This document shows positions 1-63,094 of a stretch of 64,000 nucleotides of DNA, piece by piece. The translations under genes were made by a program, and so were the position numbers. Origin of the DNA: Haliotis rubra (Eukaryota). Position 1 is the first letter of the stretch. Each line of letters starts with the position of its first letter. The notes beneath the pieces were generated by a model. That model was not told the DNA's origin, made no database searches, and saw only the letters and a list, made by a program, of their open reading frames with translations. The DNA is taken from contig NW_025766002.1 of NCBI RefSeq assembly GCF_003918875.1, forward strand, positions 496,001 to 560,000. The letters run 5' to 3'.

Positions 1-19
1 AACACATGCAGTTTCTTAC

Positions 20-79
20 CCGAGGCTTTTTCTCCTCATCATCCAACACTTCCACCAGCTGTGTAACACTGTGGCAAGC
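20..79 (-). CDS. DDX43: DDX43-like exon 19 (gene continues beyond window start)
   Basis: tag|ACHSVTQLVEVLDDEEKKPR|gtaag. Confidence 0.9.
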
Positions 80-862
80 CTATAACGAAGTGAGTGAGTG
101 AAGCTAGAAATGAAATTCTAGACACAGAAATACTTGTCCTATTTTGATAGTAATCACAGAATACTACCACAGAAACATACATATGAGAAAACAGACACTA
201 AGGAAACAACAAAATCAATAAAGATTTCTGTCACCATAAACCAATTACCAAAATTGCCTGAAGCAGTCATAAAATCCTCACTTCACGTCAATCTTACAAA
301 GGTATATTATGGGTCTGTAATGCTTGCAAGTTTCCACTCGGAAATAATGAAGTTAAGGCACGTTAGCCACAGACAACTGGATAGAGGAATGAAAGTCAAA
401 GCACCACAAGACAAGCTCACTGAATTTTCAGTTGGGGGAGCTAAAACTGCAGGTGTCCTTTGTTTGTAATACAAAGAGATGCAATATTATCTGGACATTA
501 TAATCTGAACAAGTGAACTCTGCTCAAGATAAAAAAGAGCTGCATCTGGACACAATGAAGTTACATGCCATATCACTCATACATCATTTGAATGTTCCTT
601 ATTTGGAGTTTGCTGCTGTTGACAATCCCTCTGAGAGAAGATATGTTTTTCATAAGGAAGCAATCAATATTATCAAACTGAACTGCAGCTATCTCATATC
701 TAATCAGGAAAGTTCACAGGCTTGGACCTGTCGTTAGCTAATTTGTGTCAGTAAATTTTACAGATATTAATTTCATGATTACTGGTTCTATTATATAACA
801 TATATGGTCACTGTTCCACTGCACCAGAGTGAGTAATGGGACAGCATACTCGAATGTAAAAA

Positions 863-1133
863 TGAGTGAGTGAGTTAGTTTAGCTTTACGCTGAACTCAG
901 CAATATTCCAGCCAAATGGCGGCGGTCTGTAAATAATCAAGTCTGGACCAGACAATCCAGTAATCAACAACATGAGCATCGATCTGCGCAATTGGGAACC
1001 AATGACATGTGTCAACCAAGCCAGCGAGCCTGACTACCCGATCCCGTTAGTCGCCTCTTATGACAAGCATATTCGCCTTTTGTGGCTAGCATGGGTTGCT
1101 GAAGACCTATTCTACCCCGGATCTTCACGGGTC
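863..1133 (-). mobile_element. SINE-like family B
   Basis: Full copy from 5' end gacccgtgaag to the (TCAC)n tail. Confidence 0.88.
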
Positions 1134-1251
1134 ACATGTAAAACTGAGAGTGTTCGGTAATGTTAAATTTTCAAACCCTTATGAACAAGTAAGGTTGATC
1201 TAACACTGATTTTCATGACAAGAACACCATTTGAAGGATTAAAAGACTTAC

Positions 1252-1339
1252 AGCCAGATCAAGTGTCCCGACAAAGATGTTGATGGGGCTGGACATGTAC
1301 ATGTCTGCTAGCCGCTGAACTTCTTGTGGCCAGGTGGCG
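1252..1339 (-). CDS. DDX43: DDX43-like exon 18 (motif III SAT)
   Basis: cag|SATWPQEVQRLADMYMSSPINIFVGTLDLA|gtaagt. Confidence 0.95.
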
Positions 1340-1470
1340 CTGCCAACAGAACCAACATTCTCGTGGATTGGTTCCAGTAATATCACAGATATTTGAATAA
1401 TGCCTGTCTCAGAACTGATTAGCAGGTCCAGTCATCAGTGACCAGTCACATGACAGTGACTGACATCATA

Positions 1471-1632
1471 GTGAGTGAGTATGGTTTTACAACGCTTTTA
1501 GCAATATTCCAGCAATATCAAGGCGGGGGACACCAGAAATGGGCTTCACACATTGTACCCATGTGGGGATTCGAACCCAGGTCTTGGGCGTGACGAGCGG
1601 ACGCTTTAACCATTAGGCTGACCCCACCGCTC
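1471..1632 (-). mobile_element. tRNA-derived SINE family A (~165 bp, (TCAC)n tail)
   Basis: A box tagtggttaa and B box ggttcgaatcc on the sense strand; TSD gactgacatcata. Other copies near 2965, 7534, 8603, 10090, 20170, 20424, 24184, 30443, 34284, 36856, 41840. Confidence 0.9.
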
Positions 1633-2125
1633 GACTGACATCATACCCAGCAGTACATACTCCATACATTGATGTAAGCTCCTCTATCCCTCATGAATAC
1701 ATACGATTTGTAATGGTGAAGAGATATTTATGCGAGACTTCTTTCTTATTCATATCGTTTTTGGTGACAGATTTTTGCCTCAAAATTCAGGTCAGAGCTA
1801 AACAAAAAATATTTATAAAAAATAAATTTAAAAAATCCAATTTAAAAAATATTATTTTGGTCATTTCCTCTGGCAAATCATAATTCCATTTTGGAGGTTT
1901 TTATATAAAATTTCAACAGGTTGTAATTAGAGTATTTGATAAATTTATGAAAGTAAATGAGTTATTTACATTATGCTTATATCTGGTTGGGGGAATAAAA
2001 AACTTCTTCTCAATTTTCAAATGTTTGAAGTCAGCAGATTCGACAACCCATGGCAAGGTTCCACTGAGATGGTAACCAATGACATTTTTGGACAAGGCTT
2101 ATGGAACTTCTTGTGGCCATAATTA

Positions 2126-2278
<153 letters not shown>

Positions 2279-3482
2279 TTACACACAACATTCAAGGTTT
2301 ATGCCTTATCCACAGGTGAATGATTGTAATCAATAGGTTCAGGCATTCAAGCATTGGAGTTCGCAAAATAATTCGGCATATATTTGTTTGCATGCTATGG
2401 TCATATGAATGAATTTGTGTGCTAAGATTAAGTGAATGTTACATATGTTATATACGATTAAAAAAAGGAGGGGATATTGGATTTACAAGATCGATAAAAT
2501 GCAAATGATGAAGCAAGGAGGAAACAGATGATGAAGAGAAATTAAGGGAAAATGTGACAATTCATTCCATTCCCTTGGAAATGTTTCATCTGTATGGATA
2601 TATATTACTTTTTCTCAAATGTTTCATCTGTATGGATATATATTACTTTTTCTCATATGCATTGGCATTGGCTAGTGGTATGCTCGCAAAATGTGATCCC
2701 CCACTTTTTTTGAATGGTATATTTGGGATTACACTTTCTTAGTCAAGATTCTAATACTTTTGTTAGGTTGAGTCCCATCTGGGCATTGTGTATTCTTAAG
2801 TGAATGTTGTTTTTAGCCACAACCACCAACATTTCATCAATGTGGCAGATTGTAAATATTCCAGTCTAGACCAGGTGATTCACTCTAATCCACACCATCA
2901 AGACCCAAAGACACATATTACCTGTAACAGAGCCTGATGACTGCATTCATTTTGGTGATGAGAGTGAGTGAGTTGTGTTTTACTCAGGTTCAGCAATATT
3001 CCAGCAATAACATGGCAGGGAGCACCAACAATGGACTTCACACATTGTAACTGGGAATCGAACCCTTCACTGTGAAGAGCAAATGCTTTACCCACTACCC
3101 CACGGCCCCTCACTTCAGTAAACCTTTTTAACACAAGTAGGTTGCTGGGGAGTAATTCTACCCAAGACTCTGATGGTGGTCTATCCACAGAGTGTTCACA
3201 TCATGTATTATCAACTGACATTCATAGGTTAAATCATCACAGCAATTAAGAATAACTAAACGACATTTACGCCTACATATTCATGACAATTGTTTCGCTG
3301 TATTGTGCTTGCAGTAAAGTAGCACGGTTCAGTATCCAAGCAGGGATTGTATCATTAGAGTATTCTGTTCACGTATCATCAGACCACATTAATAGGGATA
3401 ACAAAGCAATAAGGAATAACTTAATGACATTTACACCTAACATGACAGTACTGTAGCTGTATTGTGTTAGCAGTACAGTAGC

Positions 3483-3925
3483 TAGGGGTGACTATTGAGG
3501 GGAGACAACTATTGGGACAATGATACTCTATTGCGACACACTATTGCGATAGTGATAGTCTATTGCAACCAACTATTGCAACACTATGGCAATAGTTTTT
3601 CTCTCCTTGAATTGTCTCATTTAAAGTCATTTCCCAAATGAATGTATAGTTTATATGAAATAAAATCAAGTTGAAGTAGCTTGAGTCTCTTTTGATAACT
3701 GGCAAGAAACTCTAACCCTAGATCAAGTAAACAGTCATGTTTGTTTAACTGGTAACAGGGACGGATAACTCTAAATCAAAGTGAACAGAAGTCAATTACT
3801 AAACTATCGATAGTCACGTATACTATCGATGCATCCATAGTTTTTCGTTTCTACCATCGATTAATTGCTATCGGAAACTCAACAATTGCAATCCATCGAT
3901 AGTTTGATTCATCCCTACAGCCCTA
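3483..3925. mobile_element. hAT-like MITE
   Basis: tagggg...gcccta ends, 8-bp TSD acagtagc/acagtaga, internal actattgc/actatcgat repeats. Confidence 0.55.
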
Positions 3926-4005
3926 ACAGTAGAACAGGTCAATATACAGGTAGGGAAGGTACAAGTAGAGAATACGGCAGGTGTCTGGTAAGGCTAAGAT
4001 TTTCA

Positions 4006-4176
<171 letters not shown>

Positions 4177-4181
4177 TCATC

Positions 4182-6163
4182 AGACCGAAATGTAACTTAC
4201 AGGAGCCGCTCCTGCAGCATTGACCGAGATGTAACTTACAGGAGCCGCTCCTGCAGCATTGACCGAGATGTAACTTACAGGAGCCTCTCCTGCAGCATTG
4301 ACCGAGATGTAACTTACAGGAGCCGCTCCTGCAGCATTGACCGAGATGTAACTTACAGGAGCTGCTCCTGCAGCATTGACCGAGATGTAACTTACAGGAG
4401 CCTGCTCCTGCAGCATTGACCGAGATGTAACTTACAGGAGCTGCTCCTGCAGCATTGACCGAGTTGTAACTTACAGGAGCTGCTCCTGCAGCATTGACCG
4501 AGATGTAACTTACAGGAGCTGCTCCTGCAGCATTGACTGAGATGTAACTTACAGGAGCTGCTCCTGCAGCATTGACCGAGATGTAACTTACAGGAGCTGC
4601 TCCTGCAGCATTGACCGAGATGTAACTTACAGGAGCTGCTCCTGCAGCATTGACCGAGATGTAACTTACAGGAGCTGCTCCTGCAGCATTGACCGAGATG
4701 TAACTTACAGGAGCTGCTCCTGCAGCATTGACCGAGATGTAACTTACAGGAGCTGCTCCTGCAGCATTGACCGAGATGTAACTTACAGGATCTCTGCAGC
4801 ATTGACCGAGATGAGCTGCTGCTCCTGCAGCATTGACCGAGATGTAACTTACAGGAGCTGCTCCTGCAGCATTGACCGAGATGTAACTTACAGGAGCTGC
4901 TCCTGCAGCATTGACGAAGATGTAACTTACAGGATGCTCCTAGCATTGACTGCCGAGATGAATGTAACTTACAGGAGCTGCTCCTGCAGCATTGACCGAG
5001 ATTGTAACTTACAGGAGCTGCTCCTGCAGCATTGACCGAGATGTAACTTACAGGAGCTGCTCCTGCAGCATTGACCGAGATGTAACTTACAGGAGCTGCT
5101 CCTGCAGCATTGACCGAGATGTAACTTACAGGAGCTGCTCCTGCAGCATTGACCGAGATGTAACTTACAGGAGCCGCTCCTGCAGCATTGCAGATGTAAC
5201 TTACAGGAGCTGCTCCTGCAGATTGAGGGCTGCTCCTGCAGCATTGACCGAGATGTAACTTACAGGAGCTGCTCCTGCAGCATTGACCGAGATGTAACTT
5301 ACAGGAGCTGCTCCTGCAGCATTGACCGAGATGTAACTTACAGGAGCTGCTCCTGCAGCATTGACCGAGATGTAACTTACAGGAGCTGCTCCTGCAGCAT
5401 TGACCGAGATGTAACTTACAGGAGCTGCTCCTGCAGGAGATGTAACTTACCTCCTGCATTGACCGAGATGTACTGCTCCTACATTGGATGCTGCTCCTGC
5501 AGCATTGACCGAGATGTAACTTACAGGAGCTGCTCCTGCAGCATTGACGAGATGTAACTTAGAGCTGCTCCTGCAGCATTGGCCTCCGAGATGTAACTTA
5601 CAGGAGCCCTCCCTGCATTGACCGAGATGTAACTTACAGGAGCCGCTCCTGCAGCATTGACTGAGATGTAACTTACAGGAGCTGCTCCTGCAGCATTGAT
5701 TGAGATGTAACTTACAGGAGCTGTTGCAGCATTGATTGAGATGTAACTTACAGGAGCTGCTCCTGCAGCATTGACCGAGATGTAACTTACAGGAGCTGCT
5801 CCTGCAGCATTGACCGAGATGTAACTTACAGGAGCTGCTCCTGCAGCATTGACCGAGATGTAACTTACAGGAGCTGCTCCTGCAGCATTGACCGAGATGT
5901 AACTTACAGGAGCTGCTCCTGCAGCATTGACCGAGATGTAACTTACAGGAGCTGCTCCTGCAGCATTGACCGAGATGTAACTTACAGGAGCCGCTCCTGC
6001 AGCATTGACGGAGATGTAACTTACAAGAGCCGCTCCTGCAGCATTGACGGAGTTGTAACTTACAGGAGCCGCTCCTGCAGCATTGATGGAGATGTAACTT
6101 ACAGGAGCCGCTCCTGCAGCATTGACCGAGATGTAACTTACAGGAGCCGCTCCTGCAGCATTG
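4182..6163. repeat. 39-bp minisatellite, ~50 copies
   Basis: Unit gaccgagatgtaacttacaggagctgctcctgcagcatt. Confidence 0.97.
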
Positions 6164-6341
6164 CACTCACAGAACTAGGCTAAATACAAATGTACCACAT
6201 GTAAATAAGTGTCTCATAACACAGCGGGTCATCCATGGACACCAAGAGGAAGGGATGACTGTATATGGTGGACGGCTGAGCTTACTAGACTCTACAGAAA
6301 TAATTAAGGTCAAGGAAACATAGAAGCATATAACCACTCAC

Positions 6342-6452
6342 CTGCGTATGCCCCTGTAGTTGATTTTCTTCACCTCCACCTCAATCTGCTGGGCCAGTTC
6401 TCGGGTCGGAGACAACACTAACACATTGGGACCACCACGCTGCTCCCTTGGG
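6342..6452 (-). CDS. DDX43: DDX43-like exon 15 (motif Ia)
   Basis: cag|PREQRGGPNVLVLSPTRELAQQIEVEVKKINYRGIR|gtgagt. Confidence 0.95.
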
Positions 6453-14363: not shown

Positions 14364-14793
14364 CTGAACATTTGACAAAACCCTGACACTGCTTTAAACA
14401 GTATTACATGTACACCATTGTATGGTGGCTTGATTTGGAAAGGAACCCTGAAGTTATTGAATGTAGGAGAAATTCACAACTGGAAAGGGGCAGTAACTCT
14501 TTCAGGTATTTTGAAATGAATTTTCTGGTTGGTGCGATGTTAACCCACTTACAGCCTAATAAATTTAAAAATAAACAAGAGTTGTTTATTGCAAAATAAA
14601 ACACTGTAGGGAGCACATCCAAGATGATAACTCACTACCCATTTAAAAACAGCTTCGACCTTTTTAAGTCATAAAGCTGTGTGTTTTGAATCTCCAGAAT
14701 TGACATCAGGATGGAACAATTATTGTGAAATAACCATATTTTGTTTGCAGTTGTTCTAAATGATTTATCTGATAGCTGCATTAAAACAATTAC

Positions 14794-14849
14794 TTTGATG
14801 CCTGCTCCACTTTCATCTTGAAGCTCTCGTATTTTGGATCCACCTTTAC
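14794..14849 (-). CDS. DDX43: DDX43-like exon 6 (KH2 GxxG loop)
   Basis: cag|GKGGSKIRELQDESGAGIK|gtaatt; 56 nt. Confidence 0.9.
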
Positions 14850-14856
14850 CTGTAAC

Positions 14857-15491
14857 ATGGACAGAGACAGGTGAGATAGTGTTTGTTGTTTTAATGACAC
14901 AGTCAGCAGAATGGACAGAGACAGGTGAGATAGTGTTTGTTGTTTTAATGACACAGTCAGCAGAATGGACAGAGACAGGTGAGATAGTGTTTGTTGTTTT
15001 AATGACACAGTCAGTAGAATGGACAGAGACAGGTGAGATAGTGTTTGTTGTTTTAATGACACAGTCAGCAGAATGGACAGAAACAGGGGAGATAGTATTT
15101 GTTGTTTTAATGACACAGTCAGCAGAATGGACAGAGACAGGTGAGATAGTGTTTGTTGTTTTAATGAATGGACACAGTCACAGAATGGACAGAAACAGGG
15201 GAGATAGTAGAACCGTCAGCAGAATGGACAGAGACAGGTGAGATAGTGTTTGTTGTTTTAATGACACAGTCAGCAGAATGGACAGAGACAGGTGAGATAT
15301 GTTTTAATGACAGAGTCAGCAGAATGGACAGAAACAGGGGAGATAGTGTTTGTTGTTTTAATGACACAGTCAGCAGAATGGACAGAGACAGGTGAGATAG
15401 TGTTTGTTGTTTTAATGACACCGTCAGCAGAATGGACAGAGACAGGGGAGAAAGTTGTTTAAATGACACAGTCAGCAGAATGGACAGAAAC
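14857..15491. repeat. 54-bp minisatellite abutting the exon 6 acceptor
   Basis: Unit atggacagagacaggtgagatagtgtttgttgttttaatgacacagtcagcaga. Confidence 0.95.
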
Positions 15492-15540
15492 AATTAAGAT
15501 CATGTTTGTGGCCGAATGTATTTCAGCTGCAGGTTAATTA

Positions 15541-16980
15541 ATGGAATATTCAAGTACTGTAATGGCAGCCTACAAAGAACCAACTCTGGAATATTCCAGT
15601 ACTGTAATGGCAGTCTACAAAGAACCAACTCTGGAATATTCCAGTACTGTAATGGCAGCCTACAAATAACCAACTCTGGAATATTCCAGTACTGTAATGG
15701 CAGCCTACAAATAACCAACTCTGGAATATTCCAGTACTGTAATGGCAGTCTACAAAGAACCAACTCTGGAATATTCCAGTACTGTAATGGCAGCCTACAA
15801 AGAACCAACTCTGGAATATTCCAGTACTGTAATGGCAGGCTGGCAGTACAAAGAACCTACAAAGAACCAACTCTGGAATATTCCAGTAGTGGCACTCTAC
15901 AAAGAACCAACTCTGGCAGCCTACAAAGAACCAACTCTGAATATTCCAGTACTGTAATGGCAGCCTACAAATAACCAACTCTGGAATATTCCAGTACTGT
16001 AGTACTGTGGCAGCCTACAAAGCCAAAGACCAACTCTGGAATATTCCAACCAACTCTGGAATATTCCAGTACTGTAATGGCAGTCTACAAAGAACCAACT
16101 CTGGAATATTCCAGTACTGTAATGGCAGCCTACAAAGAACCAACTCTGACAACTCTGGTAACTCTGGAATATTCCAGTACTGTAATGGCAGTCTACAAAG
16201 AAACCAACTCTGGAATATTCCAGTACTGTAATGGCAGCCTACAAAGAACCAACTCTGGAATATTCCAGTACTAATGGAACCAACTCATATTCCAGTATTG
16301 TAATGGCAGCCTACAAAGAACCAACTCTGGAATATTCCAGTACTGTAATGGCAGCCTACAAAGAACCAACTCTGGAATATTCCAGTACTGTAATGGCAGC
16401 CTACAAAGAACCAACTCTACTGTAGCTCTACAAAGTACAGAACCAACTCTGGAATATTCCAGTACTGTAATGGCAGCCTACAAAGAACCAACTGGAATAT
16501 TCAGTACTGTAATGGCAGCCTACAAAGCAACTCTGGAATATTCCAGTACTACAAATGGCAGCTGGAATATTCTACAAATAACCAACTCTGGAATATTCCA
16601 GTACTGTAATGGCAGCCTACAAAGAACCAACTCTGGAATATTCCAGTACTGTAATGGCAGCCTACAAAGAACCAACTCTGGAATATTCCAGTACTGTAAT
16701 GGCAGCCTACAAAGAACCAACTCTGGAATATTCCAGTACTGTAATGGCAGTCTACAAAGAACCAACTCTGGAATATTCCAGTACTGTAATGGCAGCCTAC
16801 AAATAACCAACTCTGGAATATTCCAGTACTGTAATGGCAGCCTACAAATAACCAACTCTGGAATAGTCCAGTACTGTAATGGCAGTCTACAAAGAACCAA
16901 CTCTGGAATACTCCAGTACTGTAATGGCAGCCTACAAAAAAACAACTCTGGAATATTCCAGTACTGCGATGGCAGCCAAA
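15541..16980. repeat. 45-bp minisatellite, ~30 copies
   Basis: Unit ctggaatattccagtactgtaatggcagcctacaaagaaccaact. Confidence 0.95.
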
Positions 16981-17465
16981 CCAGTGATTGCTGTAATGAA
17001 TGTATGCGTTGGTATCAATGCTGCTGTAGCCCAAAGTGATGAAGGTCTAATATGTTTAACCCTTAGGTAAAACACAAAAGCATGGGTACGGTATCAGTAT
17101 CTGGCAAGCAAACGAAATGCAAAGTGAATTCCAACGAATTTGATGACCGGGGCATTTCATAATCATTGACCCCTGTGCTTGAGGTACAAAACATCAGCCA
17201 TGTCACTAAACTATGACAACCTGTACCGTGAAATTGCCTCATATTGGGGTTAAGTGGACCTGTGAATCAGAATTCCTTGTGGCTTGCTCCTACCACAAGT
17301 ATGAAGTGGAGGCAGCCTAATTCAGACCAGGAATTCACTGTTGTAGTTAGTGAACGAGTTTATCTGTTCCAGTTAAATGATCTTTTGTTTCAAATACCAT
17401 AGCAGAAAAACATGATTTCTAAACAGTGACGACATATATGAAACTTGTTTTGAACAAAACCGTAC

Positions 17466-17753: not shown

Positions 17754-19055
17754 CAGTACAACCAGAAATTATTGAGAATTTAAAGATTGTAAATGTTTTT
17801 ATTTTTTTCCCTCATTACTCACGTATTAAATGTGAATATTAGCAGAACATAACTCCAGATTCAAAGACAGGTGAACAGTTAGTACTTTGTCAAGTCACCA
17901 TGGGCAGCAATGCAGGCTTCAATACGGCGGGGCATACTACTGATCAAAGAAGTTAGAAAGTCGTGATCCACGCTGTCCCAATATCGGACCACCTCTTCTT
18001 CATTTCAGCAATATTTGTGAGATTTTTCTTATTGACACTTTCCTTCATAAGTCCCCAAACATTTTCTATTGGATTTAGGTCAGGGCTATAGCTTGGCCAA
18101 TCTAATAATGTCATATTTTGGGTCCGAAACCAGGCCTGTGAATGCTTTGAACGATGTTTTGGGTCGTTGCCCTGCTGGAAAATCCAAACATTTCCATAGA
18201 ACACGTGAGAAGATGGAAGTAAATGTCCCTCGAGAATATTTGTGTACCGCTCACTGCTCATATACCCTTCAAATACACAGAGGGGCGTTGCCCCTAACAC
18301 AGATATGCCACCCCTCACGTTAAATTTCGGACTGTACTTTGGGCGCTGATACAAAGGTTTTTCAGTTTGTTTGGTCCAGAATTTCAGTGTATTAGGAAAC
18401 AGACACACACAGAACTTTCATCTGAGAAAATCACATTGTCCGAAAGTTAAAATTTCTATGCTGTAAGCACCAGTTCAACCTTCGCTCCTTTTGTTCAGGT
18501 TTCATGATCGGTGATGGAATTCCGAGACTTTTCAGCCAACCCATTGCATGCAGCTCAGTTCTAATTGTCTCCTTACAGACAGCCACAGTTCCCCTATCAA
18601 TCATATTCAGCCTTAAGTTTTCTTAACTCCTTTGTTTGTTTTTAGAAACAAGAATACCAAGCCGCCTCCTGTCACCGACAGTCAATTTTCTGGGCCTACC
18701 TGCGCCTCCCTGGTGCTCAATGCCATATCCATTTGCAATATTTTTCAAAACACGATAAACAGTGGACAAAGGGATGCCTGTTCTACTTGAAATCACTTTA
18801 GCTGATCTGATGTCCTTGTTATAATACTCTAAAATCAACTTCCTCTTCTCTAAATCATCCATACTGAGGATCACTGAAAATGTCCTCTGCTAGCAAGTAA
18901 ACAAAGGGGGATAACTCTTCACAAACTAATGAAAAGGATTAACGGAGTTGTCTCTCTTGAATGAAACCAAGCACTTGATAGCTGGTCAAGGTTGTTTATA
19001 CTAGAAATCCAATTAAACATATTCCTAAAATTCTCAATAATTTCTGGTCATACTA
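17754..19055 (-). mobile_element. Tc1/mariner (DD34E) transposon relic in DDX43 intron 4
   Basis: ~28-bp TIRs cagtacaaccagaaattattgagaattt (3 mismatches); broken transposase with HTH, GRPRK, FSDE, QQGNDPKH (catalytic D->G) and SPDLNPIE, 34-residue spacing. Confidence 0.9.
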
Positions 19056-22082: not shown

Positions 22083-22284
22083 CAATGATTCTTCCAACGC
22101 AACTTTCCTCCACATACATTTTAGTTGTTTCATTCTCGAAGCTTGACTCTTGTTGCTCAGAATTCTGAGAACGCCAGTTGGAAGAATCTGACCTGTCCTT
22201 GTCATCAAACCCGCCGTCCCGTCTGAACCCCCCTCCCCCTCCCCGCCTTCCCCATCCTCTTCTACCCCGTTGACCAAACTCCAT
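22083..22284 (-). CDS. DDX43: DDX43-like helicase exon 1 (RGG-rich N-terminus, start of KH1)
   Basis: ATG at 22284; MEFGQRGRRGWGRRGGGGGF...MYVEESCVGRII; G|gtaag donor; 202 nt, phase 1. Confidence 0.85.
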
Positions 22285-28530: not shown

Positions 28531-28888
28531 ACCCTTAGGATCAAAGTGGTGCACAAAATCTGTGAAGCAAGATCCAGAGTTGGCAGATAGTGCCAATTAG
28601 CGCATCTGAGGAAGTGAAATGAACTGCTTCAAGTGACCACATGAAAACGTTTCATAACGTTTGACAGAAGACATATTTTATTTCTTGTTTTGGACATGTT
28701 AAAGGATGTGGGAATAAGGGAACATTCAAATTTCCATGCTATTCTGTTACATGCATCATGTTGAAGGATGACATGAAATCGTTTGTGTTTTTCTCATGTA
28801 TTTACAATTATTTGATGATACCAGATCCATGTCATTTGGTAAAACAGTTATGTATAGATTAATGAACTTTCTTCTGTCTGTATTTCAG

Positions 28889-29010
28889 GTGTAAATAGGT
28901 ATTTCCAAATGATGTTTATCCATGATAAGCTGAACAACGCCAGCAGCCGGAAGATCTCCTCCAAGCACATATGGAAACATCTTACAGAGATGTATGATTT
29001 ACAGGCATTG
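28889..29010 (+). CDS. MRGBP: MRGBP exon 2
   Basis: cag|GVNRYFQMMFIHDKLNNASSRKISSKHIWKHLTEMYDLQAL|gtcagt. Confidence 0.95.
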
Positions 29011-44329: not shown

Positions 44330-45070
44330 TTAACACTCATGATGCCTCATCAACGTCAAAGACGTCGGTTGATGTCAGAGCAATTGGGGAGATGCTTGAA
44401 CCAGGCTTCTCACGATGTAACCTTGCGAATGCACTAACCGTCAGACAAAGCATTTTAACAGAGCGTGGAACTGTAATCGAACTCTTGCTATGACAGCACA
44501 CCTTCATATTGGTGGTCGTCAAAGGTCTACTACAATGACAAGACCACTAATCACGTATGGGAACTTTTGATTTTGACTCAAGATCATTGTCACTTTAAGA
44601 ATGCTAAAAATTTTGAACATGATCGCTATGAGAGGATCCATCATGGACTGTGGAGGAATCAGCAGAAACAGAAAAACTGATCTGCATGTCATGGGGAGGG
44701 TACGATGACAGGCGTTCAAGTACAGGGATGAGACCCTACACTGGTGCCGTTGGTCCAGAGTTCATTATGATGGACGATAACGCCTGTCCCCATTGTGCTA
44801 GTTTCTGGAACAGGAAACAATTGTCTGTATGGAATGGCCTGTATGCATGCCGGACCTAAACCCTGTCGAACATGTGTAGAACATGCTGCAGGTTGCCATT
44901 TCCGGACATGACGCACAACCTGGGACTCTAGAACTTGGAAATGCCCTGGTCGAGGAATGGAATAACCTTCCAATGACTAGTATCTGGGTTCCTATTGACA
45001 GCATGAACCGGCAATGCCAAGCCGTCATTCAGGCATGGGGAGGTCATACCCATTATTGGCATGAACTTTG
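44330..45070 (+). mobile_element. Degenerate Tc1-like transposase fragment
   Basis: EFIMMDDNACPH, PDLNPVEHV, LVEEWNNLP, GGHTHY in broken frames; ends approximate. Confidence 0.8.
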
Positions 45071-45726
45071 AAATGGATAAAATCAAAGACACCTCTCTGT
45101 ACCCAGTTTGCCTTTTCATGATCAAATGCAATTTTTGGAATGTAATGCACCCAATGGATTTCTCAACCATTAAGTGAGTTAATTCTTTATTGAAGTCTTA
45201 TTTAATGGTGCATTAACCCCACTCTTAACATGTCATGTTATGCTTACCAAGCCATGTGTTGCAACAACTTTGCAAAAGCTTAGCTGCTGAAACTGTCATA
45301 ACTGATGATGCAATAGAATTGGCTATGAAACTCAATTGGGTCCATGCCCCATGAGCCAAGGACAAGATTTGACGAAAAATCACATTTTTTTATTCTTGAG
45401 AATGGATTTACATTTGCATGAATACAGTAGAGATTCCATATTTCAATGGAGACAAAAAAAAATTATTACATTTAAAAAAAATGAAAAACAATTACAAAAT
45501 GAATTTGTGATGAATATCACTTTGTTAAAAAGCTTCGACAGATGTTACAAACCTAGCATAATTAGCAGAGTGGCAGCAATTGCTCATGTCAAATAAAATG
45601 CGTAAAAATTCAACACAGGGTCTCGAGTAATGCAGGTTGCTCAGCAAGTTTGATTTGGATGGTGTTCAATGTGATAACTTTTACTGTGCATCTTCTTTGG
45701 CTGTGCCAGGCAGATGTTACTATGGA

Positions 45727-45809
45727 TTAATACTGCGGATTTGGGCATTCACGGGCGAAATGGCCATCTGCACCGCACTGGAAGCAAGCATTGTTGCGAT
45801 GACGTTGGG
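45727..45809 (-). CDS. RGG-KH-CCHC protein exon 4 (zinc knuckle, stop)
   Basis: tttcag|PQRHRNNACFQCGADGHFARECPNPQY*; CX2CX4HX4C; phase matches exon 3; total 537 nt (178 aa). Confidence 0.87.
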
Positions 45810-46140
45810 CTGAAAATAAAAGAAGTTAAATGTTAACTGAAACACAAGATTTCACAGGAATAATTCAGACTAAATGAGGCATGATGTGTGGAGACATGCA
45901 ATTGTCATTTCTTGTAGTATTCGTTAAAATACAGAATTGGCCTAATCAGCATAAATATAGTATGATCTATTGATTTACAGTACGCAGATTTGGTGCAGTT
46001 TAGATTCCTGAACTGACATTCATTAGCAAATTTCTGCATTAACCCAGCAAACGTGGATTAATACTCCCATACAAAAAATGTTACAAAATTATGCAACATA
46101 TCTTAATAACTCAAGAAAAAGATTATGAAATTTTACTCAC

Positions 46141-46261
46141 GACCGCTCCTGTCCTGTGGCTCTTCCAGTTCCCTGATCAATGCTTCTGCTGCTTGTCTGT
46201 GCTGACTCTCTCCAGACAACTGGATTCGAACTCTTCCACCTTCTGCCTGGTCACTGAATAC
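46141..46261 (-). CDS. RGG-KH-CCHC protein exon 3
   Basis: aag|VFSDQAEGGRVRIQLSGESQHRQAAEALIRELEEPQDRSG|gtgagt; 121 nt. Confidence 0.88.
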
Positions 46262-46769
46262 CTTAAAATGATGTTAGGACATAATCAGAAACAAGTTTCC
46301 TTTGAACATTTCATTACAATTACTCCATATAGTACTGTTTACACTCATTACATCAATCACCCAAACTGAAAAGTCAAAAGTCACTTGGATGACTAATCAT
46401 ATAGCTAAAGCCAGCATTTGTTTAATTCAACTGCACACTTTAGATCAGTGATGGAAGTATATAAAAAGCAGTCGTTTAAAATTTTCATTTTGGATGTGTC
46501 CCACCAACAAGTGAAACAAATCAATTTACTCTAGTTCAGCTTTCTATCAATTTATTAACATTAAAAACATTTAAAATAATATTCTGAATAGAAATTACTT
46601 TAAGATTTAAAAACACTTTGACGAAAACATTACTCATGTAAATACTATGAATTATTAAGGGGATTCCATTTTTTGTTGTGCCAGTCATGTGCTATTAATG
46701 TATAACACATGGCATACCTCATAGTGGTATCCCAAAAAAGCCCTCCAAAATTCCTGTAGTTCAACATAC

Positions 46770-46825
46770 TTTAATCAAAGCTCCACTTTGGTCCTGCAGC
46801 TCACGAATTCTCTGACCCCTTTTCC
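46770..46825 (-). CDS. RGG-KH-CCHC protein exon 2 (KH GxxG loop)
   Basis: cag|GKRGQRIRELQDQSGALIK|gtatgt; 56 nt, same size and phases as DDX43 exons 2 and 6. Confidence 0.9.
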
Positions 46826-48734
46826 CTGCAAAGGTAACAGACATATTTACATCATGAAAGTAAATCTGTAACAATATCAAGTGTTCATGTTTGTCGTCAT
46901 TTGACCTACATCATTTGATAGGGATTACCATTACCGGTTATTCCATTACATACATAAACAATTATCTTGGTATCCATAATGAAAGTAAACAAGACCTTAA
47001 AGGGCCAGTATATCAACCCTTCTGAACTACTGAGAGTAAATAAGAGATAACCCTCAACTTGACTCTGCTGTGGCTTGCTTAAGGTTAGGTGTGTAAATTC
47101 TACTTCCAGGAACCCATGTACAATTTTTATATATTAAGATTCAGGTTTTGAGGAGAAAATGTCATGTGTGCATGCATGCAAAAGTACAGAACATGATCAG
47201 GGATTGGGAAAGGCAGGGGACCTGGGCCATTAGAATAAAAAAATGGCCCATTAAAATTTTGAAGTTTACTATTGACACAAGGGCAGTGACCCTTTCAAAA
47301 TTCAGAAAATGGCTAATAATCCTGAAACTGGACCATTGTCAAAGTTCTCTCTCCCGATCCCTGCATGATCAATATTCTTCACACAACCCTCCCTCAATGA
47401 AGTGCTCACTTTAAGTGCGCTACTCATAAAATTGTCTGATTTAAAAACACCCGCAACTACCACTGGCCCTTTAAAGCTTCTTGGGCTGGGACCGTACAGG
47501 CCGGGAGCTGTCCCCTCTGATATTATCACAATACTTCCATGTGCTATTTGGTGACTAGCATTTTTTTCAATAGATACGATGACCAAATGCCTGTATACTG
47601 TGTAACCACTTGGCCAGTCTGTTCGCCTTAAGCTAAAAGGGAGACAACTATACCAACATTAAAAACACATGGAATGGGGTGACTGCCAGTGTTAATTATG
47701 GCACAATGAGATGAAAATATTTCACTTCTAATTGGGCTCTTTGGGGGTCACTGGTGGATACTGTATATTGTCCCAGCCCTAAGAGCACAAAGTAAAATGT
47801 CTAATACTTTCAAACCTGTTTACAAGAGAAATAAGACATTAAAGAAATTTATATTCCAACATTTTGAATACACCATCCATGTACCTGAGCTTTTACTCCA
47901 AACAGATTCATAGAGTGCAAGATTTGTTTTCTTAATTATAAAACACTGATCAATGTCAAGGAGTGAGAAATGTAACAAAAAAGTAAGCCTTTTTACTTAC
48001 TTTATAATGACACATTTTACATTAAGAGACACTCTCCTCCCCACCCCCCTGATGGTATGACGGCCAATTAGAGCCAATTTGGTACTGTTAAATATATGGC
48101 ATCCAAAGAAGAGACTGCAAAAGACATGAAAAGAATATTCAAATTCGGCTGGGGAGAATTCAAGTGCATTTAAAAAAAATCTGGTGTAATTAACAAACAT
48201 AATTAAATTGAATCGCCAGAGGAAATTACTCAGGAAACAATGTGGTGTTTAAGTCGCAATTATATATGGAACGACGAGCAAACATTAATATTCAAATAAT
48301 CAGAATCCAAATTATGGTATATGGTAAGAATATGATTCATGTAAAATGAAAACTGAACGAGAAATTCTGGACTCACTTTACTTACCGGCACCAGGACAAT
48401 CACTGACAAAGCACATGGCCCACGAACACATGGTCATGATTTGGCTCGCACAGCATCCTCAAAGCGAGGCAAAGGCGTTCAGAAACATACACGACCACAA
48501 AACAAACCAAAATCTGTCGGACAATCTGATTCCACACAATTTTCACAACAGTTTGATAGCAAATCTCGAGCTCTGGGGCATTCTCAGTCGCTAGGTAGCT
48601 TTATCGAGCTATGTAACAATGGCCGCCAAAATCTGACCGACATGTTCCCAAAGAAGCGCACATGTTATGCCGAGAACATCCTGAAACTCAAGACAAAAAA
48701 CACCCACAAATGAACAATAATGTAGCATGCTAAC

Positions 48735-49011
48735 CGATTATTCTGCCGACAATTGACTGGTCAACGTAAATGTCTGTTTTTCCACCGGGGTTGTTCCAGT
48801 TCGAATGATATGAACCACCATCATTGCCTCGGCCGCCATCACGGCCTCCGCCATAATTATCACGTCCTCCGCCATAACCTCCATCTCGTCCACTGCCATA
48901 ACTGCTTCCCCCAACTCTTCCTCCGCCATAACTATCATGTCCGCCGAAACCATCATTTCCGCCAAATCCACCACCCCTTCGCCTGTCTGATCGCTCGTAC
49001 CCTCTCTGCAT
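48735..49011 (-). CDS. RGG-KH-CCHC small RNA-binding protein exon 1
   Basis: MQRGYERSDRRRGGGFGG...KTDIYVDQSIVGRII G|gttag; 277 nt, phase 1. Confidence 0.85.
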
Positions 49012-52000
49012 TGTGTCTGTTGTCTGTCAAAATGTCTGCCCCTTCAAGAACTTAAACGAAATTGCTTGCCTATCCCACAATCCCCTTCACCGGAAAAGAC
49101 GGAACAGCAGCAACACGCATGATACGTCACAAGTTGAAATTCGTACAATGCCTTTTCAGTTTTAGACGCGCACATCGATTTCAACTGTGTATGAAATCTT
49201 TACGAAGCTTACGCATCAAGCTCATCGCATTATGATAACTGTAATCATTTAAAAGAAGAATCAATACACCCTTGCCACATAAACATATTCGGATTGTTCT
49301 ACGTAAATGTGAGGAAATTCTTACCCATCTAAAACAACTTCACGCAAATTGTCCGAACCGGAACCAACAGCGATTGGCCTTGAGTTCAAATGATTCATTC
49401 AGTGAGTAGTTGTGCAAAGAGTAAATAACTGGGGTTGTTTGGTCTTTTTGTACATGCGCATTGTATGTTATGCATAGATATGGTTATAACAGGATATGTG
49501 TCAATTTGATGTTATAAAACGAGTGCATTCTTGTATGCTATGAAGAGATGGTAAAAGTACAAGAATTCTTATACGAGTTTTGTAAGATCAGTATTACACA
49601 CATGCGAGTGATCTATAGAAATTTATCGGTGTATGTGTGTCATAGGCTTCTACGAGACTCGTGTAATAATTCTAATATTAGCCGGAGGAGAGGTACGACA
49701 CACGTGGGGTAAACTATTCTTTTTCTTTCCCATTTCACATGTTTCTAGTGTGACGTCATTCCGATCTTACGTCACAATAGGATTCGAATCACGTTAACAT
49801 TCAGATGATGTACACATGACCCATGTATTCATGAAAAGATTTGTACCTAGTACATGTGCGGTGTCTAATAATTGGCAGATGTTTCTTAACCTGTGGGTAA
49901 TAAAAGTAAACTAGATTGTGCGTTGACCAATGACACACTACCTTTCATATTTAGATAACAATGGTATATTAGAACTAAACTGAAACCAAAAAGAGCATTT
50001 TCAGAAATACACTCTAGAATGTAACAAGTGACATTTCAGGGTAAGTGATATTTCATATCTGTCACTGTAAACACTTTTCAAGACACGTAAATTACATCAT
50101 ACTCGCACATGACAAAGTTTAACAAATTGGAACTGATATATATTTGCTTTCAGTTTTAACTTTTAAGTTAAATATTCAACGCAAGGATGGGATATAATAT
50201 GCTACTGTTATGTAACTTTCATAGCTCCTGGCATAGTTGTAACATTACAGTTAACTTTGTTAATGGTCGGTTTTTAAGTGTGACGAGAACTCGAATTTAG
50301 AAATCAGTTGTTAAGGAAGAAAGTATCATTTCATATTTATGGATCTTTTCTTTGTGTTTCGTATTGAAAACAAAGTCCACAAATTATCGTTTCTTAAAAA
50401 AGTTTGTCATGATTATATGCGTTGTAGGAAAGTGCATCCGCTATCACATCAGTCACATTGGTTATTTACAGGCACGCACGCACACACACGAGAGAGAGAG
50501 ACAGGGTTGATTTGAGGTTCAACGTATAATCGAACAAGATCACTTATAAACAACAGTTAGAACACCTGGTTTCTAGTGCCTTCAATTTTTTTTACAGAGT
50601 GACCTCCCTTCCACCATTTGAGGACCCATAATCTGCTCAGCGAAACACGACATACATGGTTAATGCCGATTCCGTTACTCTCTGCAGTAAAGCAAAATCC
50701 AGTTAATCTATTTCAAAATGAAATAAATATGAAAAAGACCTAACATAAACATATATATTTTCTTTCTGTCAAGGTATGTGAAAAATTTAGGCGAGAGGTA
50801 TCGTATTATATTTGCACGACCGAAGGCAGTGTTATATTCTATTTAATTTTGATTAGAAAAGAATACATTGAATATATAATGTCATTGTCGTGGAGGGCAT
50901 AGGTAATGGCACATTATATTTACATTTATATCCAAACATTCAACAAAGGTGCCTGATATACCGTGACAATCTTGACATGCACTCACTGACTCAAGAAGTG
51001 ATAATTACATTTAGAATAAATTAATGAATAAATAAATATTTGTTATCTTTTAAGCAAATAAAATATTTTGAAGTTTGTTTACTTCTGATCTTGTAAAAAT
51101 CTGGCTAAAGGTTCGAATATAATATAATACCGCTCTAATATCGGCGGTCTCGCATTGCGTTCGTGCGAAAGGAGACATGAAAATACATGTAAGTTTGATC
51201 CGAAGTTTGGTGAAACTAAATACATGTACACACTTCATGAGTGAAATTGTAGCTGCAATACGTGACAAACGCCTTTGACTTGAAAATCGGCCGTCAGATA
51301 CGCATTGGTTCTGGTTACAAATGTGGTTTTGCTGGTACAGGGCTAAAAGCGGCGTAAAACTATACTTACTCACTCACGCACCCACTCACTCAATGTCTGG
51401 GTATCCAGACTAGGCAGCCTGTCCGCAATTCACATGTGATAATATTTAAATGGTTTATGGATAATTGTCTGTTGATAGGCATTTCTTAGAAATTTACGTA
51501 TGACTTAGTAACTAAAAAATATTATGGACAGCCTATCTATGTAAGAGCCACGTTTCGTCAAACATGACAATGGTATATGAATAAATACTGCATTGGCGTT
51601 ATTCAATTAAAGTTGTTGTCCATATTCTTGTCTACTTTGTGGTCCGGTATTAACGGTATTAATGCTGAAGAAACATATTCTGGAATGTGTTTCTACACGC
51701 TATGGTGTATGAAGGGTTGGTTTCTCTACAGCTGCAGCTTCCTTGCTTTGTGAAGCCGGAGGGCGATTGACAGGGTGCCAGTCTATGCGGGATCCGACAC
51801 TACAGTTAGACTTCGTTTTCTTTTTTGTAGCGCTGTAAGGAAGTGCGCGATAGCGATCGATGAATAACCGTCGCCCCGCGTAAGCAAGGGACATCTGAAA
51901 ACTGCTCTCTGATCAGTTCAGGTTGCTTGGTTATTTCAAATAATACATGCCTGACTGCTTTTTAGGGAAGGGAGGTTACGTTGTCGGCGACGGGTTCCGC

Positions 52001-59460: not shown

Positions 59461-59973
59461 AATCATATCAGTGACTGGCCATGGACCACCCAGTCTTGCC
59501 CAGACAATCCAGTGATTGAATAATTTGGAGCATCGACCTAAGCAATAGTAACGTGCATTAACATTTCATTTAGTCTGATATCTGATCCCGTTAGTCGACT
59601 CCCGCGACAAGCACGACGTCAAGTTACAGCCCTTTAACCATCGAGGCCTAAACAAACAAACAAACAAAACACCCCCCCAGAAAACATTGAGGTCTCTATT
59701 CTTTCATCACGTGCAGGGAATACCAGGATATTTTTCCAACCCAAATTGGATAATCAGTGATGCACAGCAAGATATTGTTCACTGTGCTTTCAATCTCGAG
59801 TTACTTGATCAGATAGAGAACGAAAACTGTCTTGTTTTGTCATTTATTTGAAAGCTATCTGCAATGTTCAACACACATGTTATTATTGATATATTAAACT
59901 TTACACCATCACATGTACATATCCCACACGGCAATATATGACGCATAATGTAAGTGTTAACTATCACAATCAG

Positions 59974-60528
59974 CTACCAAACACCAGCATCACTTAGCTC
60001 CTGTATATAGTTCAGAATAATGTTGGCCTTCACGACATTCACTCCCAACGCATAATGTGTCCCATCAAAGCTTCGCACGCCATCCGTCATGTTAAATGTC
60101 TTTAAAACAGGTACCTCATACTCATTCAGAAACTTCTCCATATCTCGATTGTATCGAAGAACGTGTGGTTTTGATTGGGTGTCTGAACGTTTCATAATTC
60201 CTGGAGCATTCATATCAACAAATAATACCTTTGGCCATAGGATGCCAATCTTTCGTAGCCTATCCAGAGTTGGCTTTAGGTATTGCATCTTAACTTTAGT
60301 CGAGTTATAATCTTCATGAATACCTATACCAACTACGAACAAGGTCCTCCGGTCAGCTAAGCCTTCAGTGACGTCATTGATCAGTTCTGTCCAGCGTCTA
60401 CTGACATAGTGTTTCTTCCAGCTGAGTTTCACCCTGCCTCTACATATATTTATTTGGCTTTGCATCCAGTCGTCTCCTGCAGTTTTGTTCTTCGAACATG
60501 TTCATCCCAGAGCATTTAGATTTCCACA
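59974..60528 (-). CDS. SGNH/PC-esterase-like protein exon 2 (apparent frameshift near 60450, or alternative acceptor at 60476)
   Basis: ttttcag acceptor; VVGIGIHE and SFDGTHY (DxxH) motifs; reading frame breaks at AAATAAAT 60448-60455. Confidence 0.7.
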
Positions 60529-60581
60529 CTGAAAATAGTAAAGAGGTCATTTAAAACATCTTTCTAATTCTCATTTAGAAT

Positions 60582-60818
60582 TGGTTGGTTGTTAAACGCC
60601 GCACTCAACAATATTCCAGCTATACGGCGGCGGTTGGTAAATAATCGAGTCTGGACCAGACAATCCTGTGATCAACAGCATGAGCACCGATCTACGCATC
60701 TGAGATACGATAACATGTGTAAACCAAGTCAGCGAGTTTGACCACCCGGTCCCGTTAGTCGACTCTTAAGACATGCATGGGTTGCTGAAGACCAAATCTA
60801 ACCCGGATCTTCCCGGGT
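60582..60818 (-). mobile_element. SINE-like family B in the SGNH gene intron
   Basis: Full copy. Confidence 0.85.
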
Positions 60819-61126
60819 CTGTAATTTAGAAGAACAGTAAAGACAAGTCCGGGGAATTCGGAGGAAAATAAGCTAAAAACGTAACTGTAGCGGGTGGCGA
60901 AAAGGTGAATAAGATTTGCATTTTAAAAATGAGAGTACTTTCGCAGTTGCGACCCTTGGGGATGGTCATGGGAAATATCTAGAAGTAGTTGTGGAAAAGC
61001 GATCCAAAAATGGACTGGAAGGGTAAATATGTTCAGTACATATTTACAAGCCTCTGTCCCACCTAATCCTACACACACACACACACACACGCTAATATAT
61101 TGCCACCCCTATGGGATAATACGTAC

Positions 61127-61814
61127 TTTTGGATTCGGTTGGTTTAACACTGCCATCTTTGAAGTTGCCTCGAACAGTCATCAGGAAGGCTGTGTAAATG
61201 TGCCGCACGAGGGAATCCCCAAGGAAACTGATGGTTCCGCCGTCCAACAAATGGCAGGTCTGTCTGGCACTGTAGTGTTGTGGTCGACATCGAGGATCGG
61301 ATGGTGTCCACGTGGAATATTCTGCATGAATCTGCTGTCGAATATCCCAACAATTTTTACACCGACATTGGGCTTCAGTCTTTTCAACACACTTAAAGTT
61401 GTAGCAGCATGGGGTCGGTCCTGTGGGACTGCAAATCGCTCGAAGGAAAGTCGTCACGTTTGTATAGCCTACGTTGCCACATCGATTGTCAGGTCTCTGG
61501 AGGGATTTCGGTACTCCTTTGTGATTCAAGGCCATGTGATAAAACCATTCTGATTGTTTCGCTTGAGCCTTGGTAAGCTTTCTTGTCCTCCAACGACCTT
61601 GGGTCATGTTTTGAAGAACGCTTGGACATCTGGATTCATAACTGTCAACCCTTGTAGGAGAAGGGGGATGGAATGCTGTATTTTGGGAGTCCAGTGTTAT
61701 CTCCAAGTTTCTGATGGGTTTGAAATGGGAGCTTATATATCCCATTACAAACAATGTTAAGCCAAATGCTGTGACTAGCATGACACGGAATGAAGAAGTG
61801 CGACGTTTGACCAT
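61127..61814 (-). CDS. Type II membrane Cys-rich / SGNH (PC-esterase-like) protein exon 1
   Basis: MVKRR + hydrophobic VMLVTAFGLTLFVMGYI anchor; Cys-rich RCG..CSPTGPTPCC..C..CRC..C; FLGDSLVRH motif; A|gtacgt donor. Confidence 0.8.
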
Positions 61815-63094
61815 GTTTGCAGTTCCAAGAGCTTTCCCAGGAATACAGACTGTCCACCATACGGCACATCTATTTATACCCCAACTAACAGGATAATCTC
61901 CCAATTAGCTATCACCTTGAAAGTACTGCTACAAGTGTCGTTAATTAATTTGCAACGTAAGCCCCATTGTTTCCAAAGCTTGCTAAATTAATTTGGGGGC
62001 TAAGAGCGATGCATTATGTCGGCCTCCCTTTAAGGAGAGGTGTAAGTAGCTGTGAAAACATCACTAGAAACACAAACTAATCTCTGCGTTATTAAAGTGC
62101 CAAAAGAGAAATCGCTCTGTCACCCGTCTTATTGTTCTTATTTACTGTCAACAAAATACCTGAAACAAATATTACTTCAGACAGACCTGAAAAGGGATTA
62201 CAGTCGACTAGACAATTAGTGCTAAAATCCGGCGACAACAGCATGCACCATCAAACTCTGTCAACTAACCTGCCAAGTGCGAGGAATAATAGCTGCTTCC
62301 GTACGTGTTCATGAATATCTATGTTTAATATATAATATCCCTTGAGATGATTTAAGTAAGTTTCATGTCTTTTGTTAAAATGTGATTACACAATGCCATT
62401 TTGTTAAAATGGATCAAAAGACTAGTATCCATCCTGTTTTGTGTGACAAGGTGTTGCAGAGAAAAATACATGAACTATCAATAGTACTTTAACAATGATA
62501 TCACATACCGTGAAACAACTTTGTCATCTCAAAAATTATTATTGAGTGTTTGGAGAGATATTTCATTCTTAACTAAACATTCCGAATTAGGAAGATGGCT
62601 TGTGAAGTGTGCCACTGGTAGGGCAGGATACGCTTGTTTTTTGTTATGTTGTAGGGGAAAAATGTACTCTCATTACACGCTATTCAACTTTACACGACTC
62701 AGCAGGAGTAAAGACACTTCCGTGTTCAAGAGAGAAGTAGTGCGTACGAAACACTAATGACGTGGTCACATAAGCTCCGCCCACTCATGTTTATTTATGT
62801 TTACTGTGCACTAAAGACAATTGTAGGTTTTAGGGCACCACACACGATCACGTTTTGGAGATCATGAGTAATCATCATCTGTGATTTCTTAACACATGCT
62901 CATGATATAGTCGAACAATCGACTCTGATTAGCCGTGTATTATATTTATATTTTGGGGATCCTTGATATGTTTTTGTGTGTAATGTCTTCGGACATGATT
63001 GAGCGGGGTGGTAGTCTATATGTAAAAGCGTTCACTCGTCACGCCGAAAAGAGCCCCAAACCACATAACCTGACTTCTTTTTAACAAAATGGTT

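Follow-up and report, generated by a model that had tools for sequence, protein, structure and literature searches.

The window analysed here, 64,000 nt of the Haliotis rubra assembly GCF_003918875.1 (contig NW_025766002.1, positions 496,001 to 560,000 of the forward strand), carries on its minus strand a small four-exon gene encoding a KH domain and a CCHC zinc knuckle, on the same strand as a DDX43-like helicase gene. This gene, the candidate below, had been proposed in a sequence-only reading of the window, and the exon structure given there stands in full: coding segments of 277, 56, 121 and 83 nt sum to 537 nt, GT and AG bound all three introns, and the joined exons form an uninterrupted 178-aa open reading frame (ORF). 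The same reading held that the gene is mostly missing from the ORF track, and the mechanical ORF list does contain exon 1 alone, as a 93-aa ORF. In window coordinates, the candidate is made up as follows.

48735..49085, minus strand: exon 1, with coding part 49011-48735 (277 nt) and a 5' untranslated region (UTR) from about 49085 to 49012; it holds the Met, the predicted disordered Gly/Arg/Tyr-rich tail (residues 1-75) and KH beta1 and alpha1 up to GRII-G, and ends in phase 1.
46770..46825, minus strand: exon 2, 56 nt, with the GKRG (GXXG) loop and helix alpha2 (G-KRGQRIRELQDQSGALIK), ending in phase 0.
46141..46261, minus strand: exon 3, 121 nt, with KH beta2, beta', the C-terminal helix and a linker, ending in phase 1.
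45375..45809, minus strand: exon 4, with coding part 45809-45727 (83 nt), one CX2CX4HX4C knuckle and the stop.
To about 45375, minus strand: 3' UTR, with AATAAA at 45394-45389 and the mRNA end 14 nt beyond it.

Transcription of this structure was followed in contigs of public runs placed on window positions 44600-50400, where runs X1 and X2 share one organism label and run X5 has another. Contigs of all three contain the predicted joints 45809/46141, 46261/46770 and 46825/48735, which read CT..AC on the plus strand and hence GT..AG on the strand of the gene, and a single 784-nt contig from X5 covers all four exons. The contig of the DNA run X12, in contrast, is colinear with the genomic sequence and lacks all three joints, so that the joined form must be derived from RNA. 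Intron-retaining contigs were also seen at low depth, as expected of pre-mRNA. The transcript contigs start near 49085 (reaching 49081-49085) and stop at 45375, and among the contigs over 44600-50400 there are no loose ends leaving exon 3 or exon 4. Given these ends, the polyadenylation signal and the missing loose ends, the locus makes its own mRNA of about 960 nt, complete from cap to poly(A), and it is a stand-alone, transcribed, protein-coding Haliotis gene.

One stretch of the reference stands out. At positions 48903-48908, in the glycine-rich tract, it carries two additional codons (six bases, in frame; 'SS' in GGSSYGSG) that are missing from all four runs, including the DNA run of the same organism label, and from H. 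asinina and H. diversicolor as well. The two extra codons are either a rare allele or an assembly variant.

The gene model is already catalogued, in RefSeq for two species and as a cDNA for a third, under names that are wrong or uninformative. The spliced translation is identical, letter for letter, to XP_046566724.1 of H. rubra (178 aa), which RefSeq calls 'keratin, type II cytoskeletal 1-like'; the name is an artefact of the glycine-rich tail, for which the Pfam keratin-head match is sub-threshold (10.8-13.3 bits). The H. asinina orthologue (176 aa) owes its RefSeq name, 'fibrillarin-like', to the RGG tail, and that of H. diversicolor (ABY87399.1, 178 aa) was deposited in a 2008 cDNA record as a 'putative RNA-binding protein'. 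No paper mentioning these accessions was found in a literature search for them. What is new is therefore the reading of what the gene is and not the gene model.

The three orthologues are pairwise 90-93 per cent identical, and none of the KH core residues, the GKRG positions or the four zinc ligands varies among them. In H. asinina the gene has the same exon structure, with four exons of 271, 56, 121 and 83 nt and GT-AG introns, and translates to the 176-aa orthologue; colinearity of this locus with the window extends from about 62.3 kb to 36.7 kb and takes in the upstream neighbour. Between H. rubra and H. asinina the ratio of nonsynonymous to synonymous divergence (dN/dS), for which the sequence-only reading had named a value near 1 as refuting its proposal, is 0.118 (dS 0.286, dN 0.034; Nei-Gojobori), which rules out a decaying copy; the product is kept under purifying selection. 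Taken by part, the ratio comes to 0.048 for the tail and 0.206 for the KH domain plus knuckle, the disordered Gly/Arg/Tyr tail being even more constrained than the folded part.

The product, of 176-178 aa, consists of that tail, one type I KH domain and one C-terminal CCHC knuckle. Pfam KH_1 (PF00013) matches residues 81-142 over profile positions 4-66 with 48.4 bits (cut-off 21.5, E 7.7e-13), and zf-CCHC (PF00098) matches residues 159-175 with 27.5 bits (cut-off 20.8, E 3e-6, or 1.1e-7 when exon 4 is searched alone). The single CX2CX4HX4C knuckle claimed at the C-terminus is there, with ligands C160, C163, H168 and C173 invariant in the three species, and it is predicted to bind zinc. The protein terminates 5 residues past the knuckle and has no helicase motif, the DEAD-box core being absent. 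Its tail is mostly of GGYGGGRD type (YGGGRD repeats), with one GRG and several GGR/RGG.

Structure prediction agrees with this division. AlphaFold2, run on a three-sequence alignment, gives a beta-alpha-alpha-beta-beta-alpha fold over residues 78-144 at a predicted local distance difference test (pLDDT) score of 82-89, with strands at 78-84, 109-118 and 121-127, helices at 85-92, 94-106 and 130-144, and GKRG at 93-96. Confidence is low at residues 1-75 (pLDDT below 50), where the N-terminal tail is predicted to be disordered, and at 148-178, where no knuckle is modelled in the absence of zinc. A Foldseek search of the PDB returned type I KH domains only, among them NOVA-2 KH3 (template-modelling (TM) score 0.87, root-mean-square deviation 1.6); other matches were hnRNP K KH3, PCBP1/2 KH1 and FUBP1, with sequence identity of at most 35 per cent, and TM to NOVA-2 KH3 and hnRNP K KH3 was 0.80-0.87. 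A structure search with an ESM Atlas model gives an agreeing KH result, and an ESM Atlas feature search gave no usable match.

The origin of the KH domain is best approached through the DDX43-like gene, which starts at 22284, contains two KH blocks and continues past the left edge of the window. Its exons bearing on the comparison are the following.

22284-22083, minus strand: KH1 exon 1, 202 nt, with Met, RG-rich tail and KH1 start, ending in phase 1.
20840-20785, minus strand: KH1 exon 2, 56 nt.
20019-19908, minus strand: KH1 exon 3, 112 nt, ending in phase 1.
17546-17466, minus strand: first exon of KH2, 81 nt.
14849-14794, minus strand: second exon of KH2, 56 nt.
14363-14252, minus strand: third exon of KH2, 112 nt.
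1..6409, minus strand: exons of the DEAD-box core, with PTRELA (Ia) at 6409, TPGR (Ib) at 4077 and DEAD (II) at 2221.

The likeness of the candidate KH to both of these copies, pointed out in the sequence-only reading, is borne out by phmmer comparisons with the same query and database size, which give 70.2 bits against KH2 and 59.0 against KH1; the best PDB KH matches per domain are NOVA-1 with 25 bits and IGF2BP1 with 23. Over 66 residues, ungapped identity of the candidate is 58 per cent to KH2 and 52 per cent to KH1, while KH1 and KH2 are 82 per cent identical in protein. The shared intron positions and phases and the shared 56-nt exon hold base by base: in all three KH copies the Gly codon after GRII is split in phase 1, the 56-nt exon ends after IK in phase 0, and the third exon ends in phase 1, that of the candidate being 9 nt longer. 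The 56-nt exon of the candidate has 64-66 per cent nucleotide identity to both DDX43 counterparts, and each of the two genes begins with an exon that holds both the initiator Met and an RG-rich tail. Most other KH_1 domains of this genome are single-exon or interrupted at other profile positions. Genome searches with exons 1 and 3 found the gene itself only, and missed the DDX43 exons too, so that they are insensitive to paralogues. The two genes had been described as lying next to each other; they share a strand, at a distance of 23 kb, but are separated by an MRGBP-like gene.

With these KH scores, the matching introns and the common 56-nt exon, the data are best explained, as the sequence-only reading had it, by a partial duplication that took in the 5' exons of DDX43, and duplication of DDX43 exons 1-3 is most likely the origin of the candidate's KH. 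The candidate is a paralogue of the DDX43 accessory module, not a member of the helicase family.

The source of the knuckle is a separate matter. In the 1.38-Gb genome the five best non-self matches of the exon 4 protein are the knuckles of one gene, a vasa-type helicase gene on contig C2323.

C2323:862009-868536, plus strand: vasa-type gene, five CCHC exons followed by a DEAD-box core.

Its core motifs include AQTGSGKT at 865000, PTREL, TPGR, DEAD at 866176, ARGLD and HRIGRTGR at 868536, and it is consistent with the Vasa of H. discus hannai, in which six CCHC motifs are reported (PMC11942353). The best match is to the last vasa knuckle, at 68 per cent over 19 aa (13/19; E 7e-4), with CF.CG.DGH.ARECPN in common, and transposon-type knuckles score lower than those of vasa. 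Each vasa knuckle, with runs of Gly on either side, is encoded by a separate small exon of phase 1-1, and intron 3 of the candidate is likewise of phase 1. The capture of a knuckle exon that had been suggested earlier is thus plausible and goes no further than that, since the vasa knuckle is nearest and of fitting phase but the match amounts to 13 of 19 residues in a constrained motif. Shuffling from vasa or a vasa-like gene would be a lead worth following, somewhat more doubtful than probable, the motif being short and constrained. The DNA of exon 4 has no other copy in the genome, so that no transposon source is seen.

Two weak matches from the genome search with exon 4 are both confined to the 3' UTR, where 45391-45596 is 72 per cent similar to C2398:105622-105822 and a 60-nt piece is 83 per cent similar to C2730:236879-236938. 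The matching segment is probably an old repeat fragment.

The KH of the candidate split from that of DDX43 long ago. Its synonymous divergence from either DDX43 KH is saturated (pS 0.73-0.84), whereas KH1 and KH2 differ by a dS of 0.85, about three times the H. rubra-H. asinina distance (0.29). Barring gene conversion, the candidate would then have split off before the internal duplication of the KH block, from a DDX43 with a single KH and well ahead of the divergence of the Haliotis species. Within the DDX43-like gene, the KH duplication is itself old, but much younger than the split from the candidate.

Taken together, these observations make it probable that the candidate is a small Haliotis RNA-binding gene composed of a duplicate of DDX43 exons 1-3 and a new knuckle exon. 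In outline, the first three exons of a then single-KH DDX43 would have been duplicated nearby on the same strand, bringing with them a start codon, an RG-rich tail and a KH domain; the copy would then have gained a terminal exon, entered in phase 1, with a cellular knuckle (closest to vasa) and a stop. The duplication would be old, and its product would have been retained under purifying selection. In the protein, the KH cleft would accommodate about four nucleotides of an RNA or DNA single strand, the knuckle would contact exposed bases, and the RGG/GY tail would add non-specific affinity and self-association. Because the human DDX43 KH binds pyrimidine-rich single-stranded DNA and RNA, and because KH- or glycine-rich-plus-knuckle proteins are known, we infer by analogy a small, ATP-independent binder or chaperone of single-stranded RNA that would have no ATPase activity.

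Several points weigh against this account, and the first of them concern its age. No relatives outside Haliotis were found in a word-indexed search with residues 72-178 among proteins of 98-311 aa, nor with the KH alone among proteins of 41-131 aa, a type of search that would admit any protein sharing VGRIIGK words; a word search with residues 53-92 also gave no candidate. An exhaustive HMMER search, made with exon 1 as the sole query, recovered the H. rubra protein itself and one further match, a frog FN3-repeat receptor phosphatase that was judged spurious; it says little on remote relatives, the query being mostly low-complexity tail. Saturated synonymous sites imply an age far beyond the genus, yet no orthologue is seen outside it, and either such orthologues are unannotated or were missed, or they are very divergent, or the copy evolved fast early on.

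Other points concern the comparison itself. Some other KH genes here are interrupted near profile position 35, and one perhaps near the GXXG, so that intron sharing is supportive in combination and is not, taken alone, unique to DDX43. Beyond composition, the likeness of the N-terminal tails is not significant, their score being reached in 60 and 188 of 2000 shuffles. As for the knuckle, the match is a short one in a highly constrained motif. The KH comparison covered the DDX43 copies of this window and solved KH domains, and RNA binding and a cellular role are proposed from the domains only.

The sequence-only reading saw in the protein a possible germ-granule adaptor or competitor of DDX43. 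As a germ-granule factor, the protein would dock on Tudor domains by a methylated RG tail while its KH competes with DDX43 or recruits it, the two genes forming a local KH module. The KH is of DDX43 type and the knuckle is closest to that of vasa, so that both parent genes would be helicases associated with the germline; in Bombyx, DDX43 takes part in piRNA amplification (PMC8025031), and the gene is under purifying selection. However, the tail is mostly YGGGRD with a single GRG, unlike the (G/A)RG arrays of Tudor ligands carrying symmetric dimethylarginine, and a local module sits poorly with an MRGBP-like gene between the loci and with transcript ends proper to each. Nothing in this analysis supports such a role, though nothing contradicts it, and we regard it as unlikely. 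The fuller proposal, of a helicase-less hybrid of the DDX43 RG tail and KH with a Vasa knuckle that serves as a germ-granule adaptor or antagonist, or else is the molluscan counterpart of eutherian KH spin-offs, must be held a little less likely still.

The likeness to DDX43 might also be one of general conservation, and the proximity a matter of chance, if the candidate belonged to an older, independent KH-plus-knuckle family (related to SF1/BBP, for example, or to other multi-KH proteins). The saturated dS against the DDX43 KHs would fit such a history, as would the introns that other genes have near the same KH positions and the known combination of KH and CCHC in SF1/BBP. Against it, the candidate scores 59-70 bits to the DDX43 KHs and at most 25 to every solved KH (BBP 17), the Pfam model of KHDC4/BBP-type KH domains reaches 15 bits where the cut-off is 30, and the candidate agrees exactly with DDX43 in its 56-nt exon and in all three phases; moreover, the word-indexed search matched no 98-311-aa protein outside Haliotis. 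An independent family is on this evidence an improbable source, and duplication from DDX43 is preferred.

Partial duplicates usually decay and the names in the databases are automatic, and a transcribed relic of the duplication with no function at the protein level might be imagined. Such a relic is very improbable in view of an ORF and splice sites intact in three species, a GXXG loop and four zinc ligands that are invariant, and dN/dS values of 0.12 (whole gene), 0.05 (tail) and 0.21 (KH plus knuckle); on the intact ORF and the overall ratio, the pseudogene reading was rejected. Least tenable of all is that the four exons belong to the DDX43 unit, either as alternative 5' exons or through a read-through isoform: they do lie upstream on the same strand, and the phase-1 end of exon 3 would fit the phase-1 start of the KH2 block, but the contigs run from exon 1 to the stop and through a 350-nt 3' UTR ending just past AATAAA, no loose ends leave exon 3 or 4, an opposite-strand gene intervenes, and an identical separate product is recorded both by RefSeq and by an independent cDNA, for which reasons this reading too was rejected.

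Two further features of the window bear on the setting of the candidate.

28888-29010, plus strand: Eaf7-domain exon of the MRGBP-like gene (PF07904, 30.3 bits, over the cut-off).
47122-47509, no strand assigned: high-copy interspersed repeat in intron 1 of the candidate, outside the mRNA.

The MRGBP-like gene between DDX43 and the candidate is transcribed divergently from DDX43. Over the intron 1 repeat, summed contig depth in the DNA run is about 35,000-62,000 against 58 in the flanks, with many loose ends, and pieces related to it are found elsewhere in the window. Within DDX43, an intron contains a Tc1/mariner-like transposase remnant (17956-18874, minus strand; DDE_3, 1e-15) with a weak HTH_23 match of 20.7 bits, below the cut-off of 24.6, and long tandem-repeat arrays occupy introns at 4392-6166 and 14790-17039, giving repetitive pseudo-ORFs in several frames. 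The upstream neighbour of the candidate (59653-62325, minus strand) is a conserved gene with a 413-aa product in H. asinina and 83 per cent nucleotide identity; its two large exons gave no Pfam match.

If the duplication from DDX43 and the gain of a knuckle are both correct, the locus would offer a clean, datable gene birth by partial duplication and exon shuffling, in which the RNA-recognition module of a DEAD-box helicase was freed from its motor, fused to a zinc knuckle and then selected. It would also provide a simple natural tool for studying the action of the DDX43 KH in isolation. Two misleading RefSeq names, 'keratin-like' and 'fibrillarin-like', are corrected here. Were a germline link or the parallel with mammalian OOEP/KHDC genes to prove true, the gene would bear on the evolution of germ-granule RNA-binding repertoires; as things stand, it encodes an uncharacterised, genus-restricted RNA-binding protein of very common domains. 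The evolutionary interpretation is largely supported and the functional one is speculative.

Among known systems, the N-terminal module of DDX43/DDX53 (HAGE) comes closest, having like the candidate a type I KH, a basic GXXG and an RG-rich tail in the same first exon, whereas the candidate lacks the DEAD-box core (motifs Q and I-VI) and has a CCHC knuckle at its end. In human DDX43, the KH binds pyrimidine-rich single-stranded DNA and RNA via a GRGG loop (PMC7949032), for which the candidate has GKRG. Three residues before the loop, all three abalone KHs have Arg where the DDX43 orthologues compared in that study have Ala (PMC7949032). With Vasa the candidate shares the knuckle signature CF.CG..GH.ARECPN, about two thirds of the nucleotides, and a phase-1 entry comparable to the phase 1-1 exons; however, Vasa carries five or six tandem knuckles and a helicase core, and the candidate has one knuckle, no core, and that knuckle on a terminal exon with its own stop and 3' UTR.

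SF1/BBP, with a KH-QUA2 unit and one or two CCHC knuckles, resembles the candidate in placing knuckle(s) after a KH and in contacting single-stranded RNA, the latter only predicted for the candidate. Its KH is of STAR/BBP type, and the corresponding model PF22675 (KH-I_KHDC4-BBP) falls short of its cut-off on the candidate (15 bits against 30); PDB chains of BBP match with 17 bits (E 0.07), and the QUA2, U2AF-binding and proline-rich regions of SF1/BBP are absent from the candidate. CNBP and the plant glycine-rich RNA-binding CCHC proteins (RZ-1, CSDP/GRP2) are thought to act as RNA chaperones. They resemble the candidate in having Gly/Arg-rich low-complexity stretches beside an RNA-binding fold or knuckles, but their fold is an RRM or cold-shock domain, or they have knuckles only, and they have no evolutionary link to it.

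The eutherian proteins KHDC1, DPPA5, KHDC3L (FILIA) and OOEP are, like the candidate, small single-KH proteins with no enzymatic domain, and their genes form in human a KHDC/OOEP cluster that we take to sit beside DDX43. The related Pfam model PF16005 (MOEP19) gives a sub-threshold match to candidate residues 81-144 (24 bits, cut-off 30), and the PDB sequence matches of the candidate include neither FILIA nor OOEP chains. These are small oocyte and embryo proteins with an atypical KH, a degenerate GXXG and an N-terminal extension (PMC3261892); the family is restricted to eutherians and has neither knuckle nor RGG tail, both of which the candidate has. A published list of genes from breakpoint-disrupted topological domains includes human DDX43 along with OOEP, DPPA5, KHDC1, KHDC1L and KHDC3L (PMC9226698). 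By analogy, the abalone gene and the eutherian OOEP/KHDC genes may be parallel spin-offs of the DDX43 KH.

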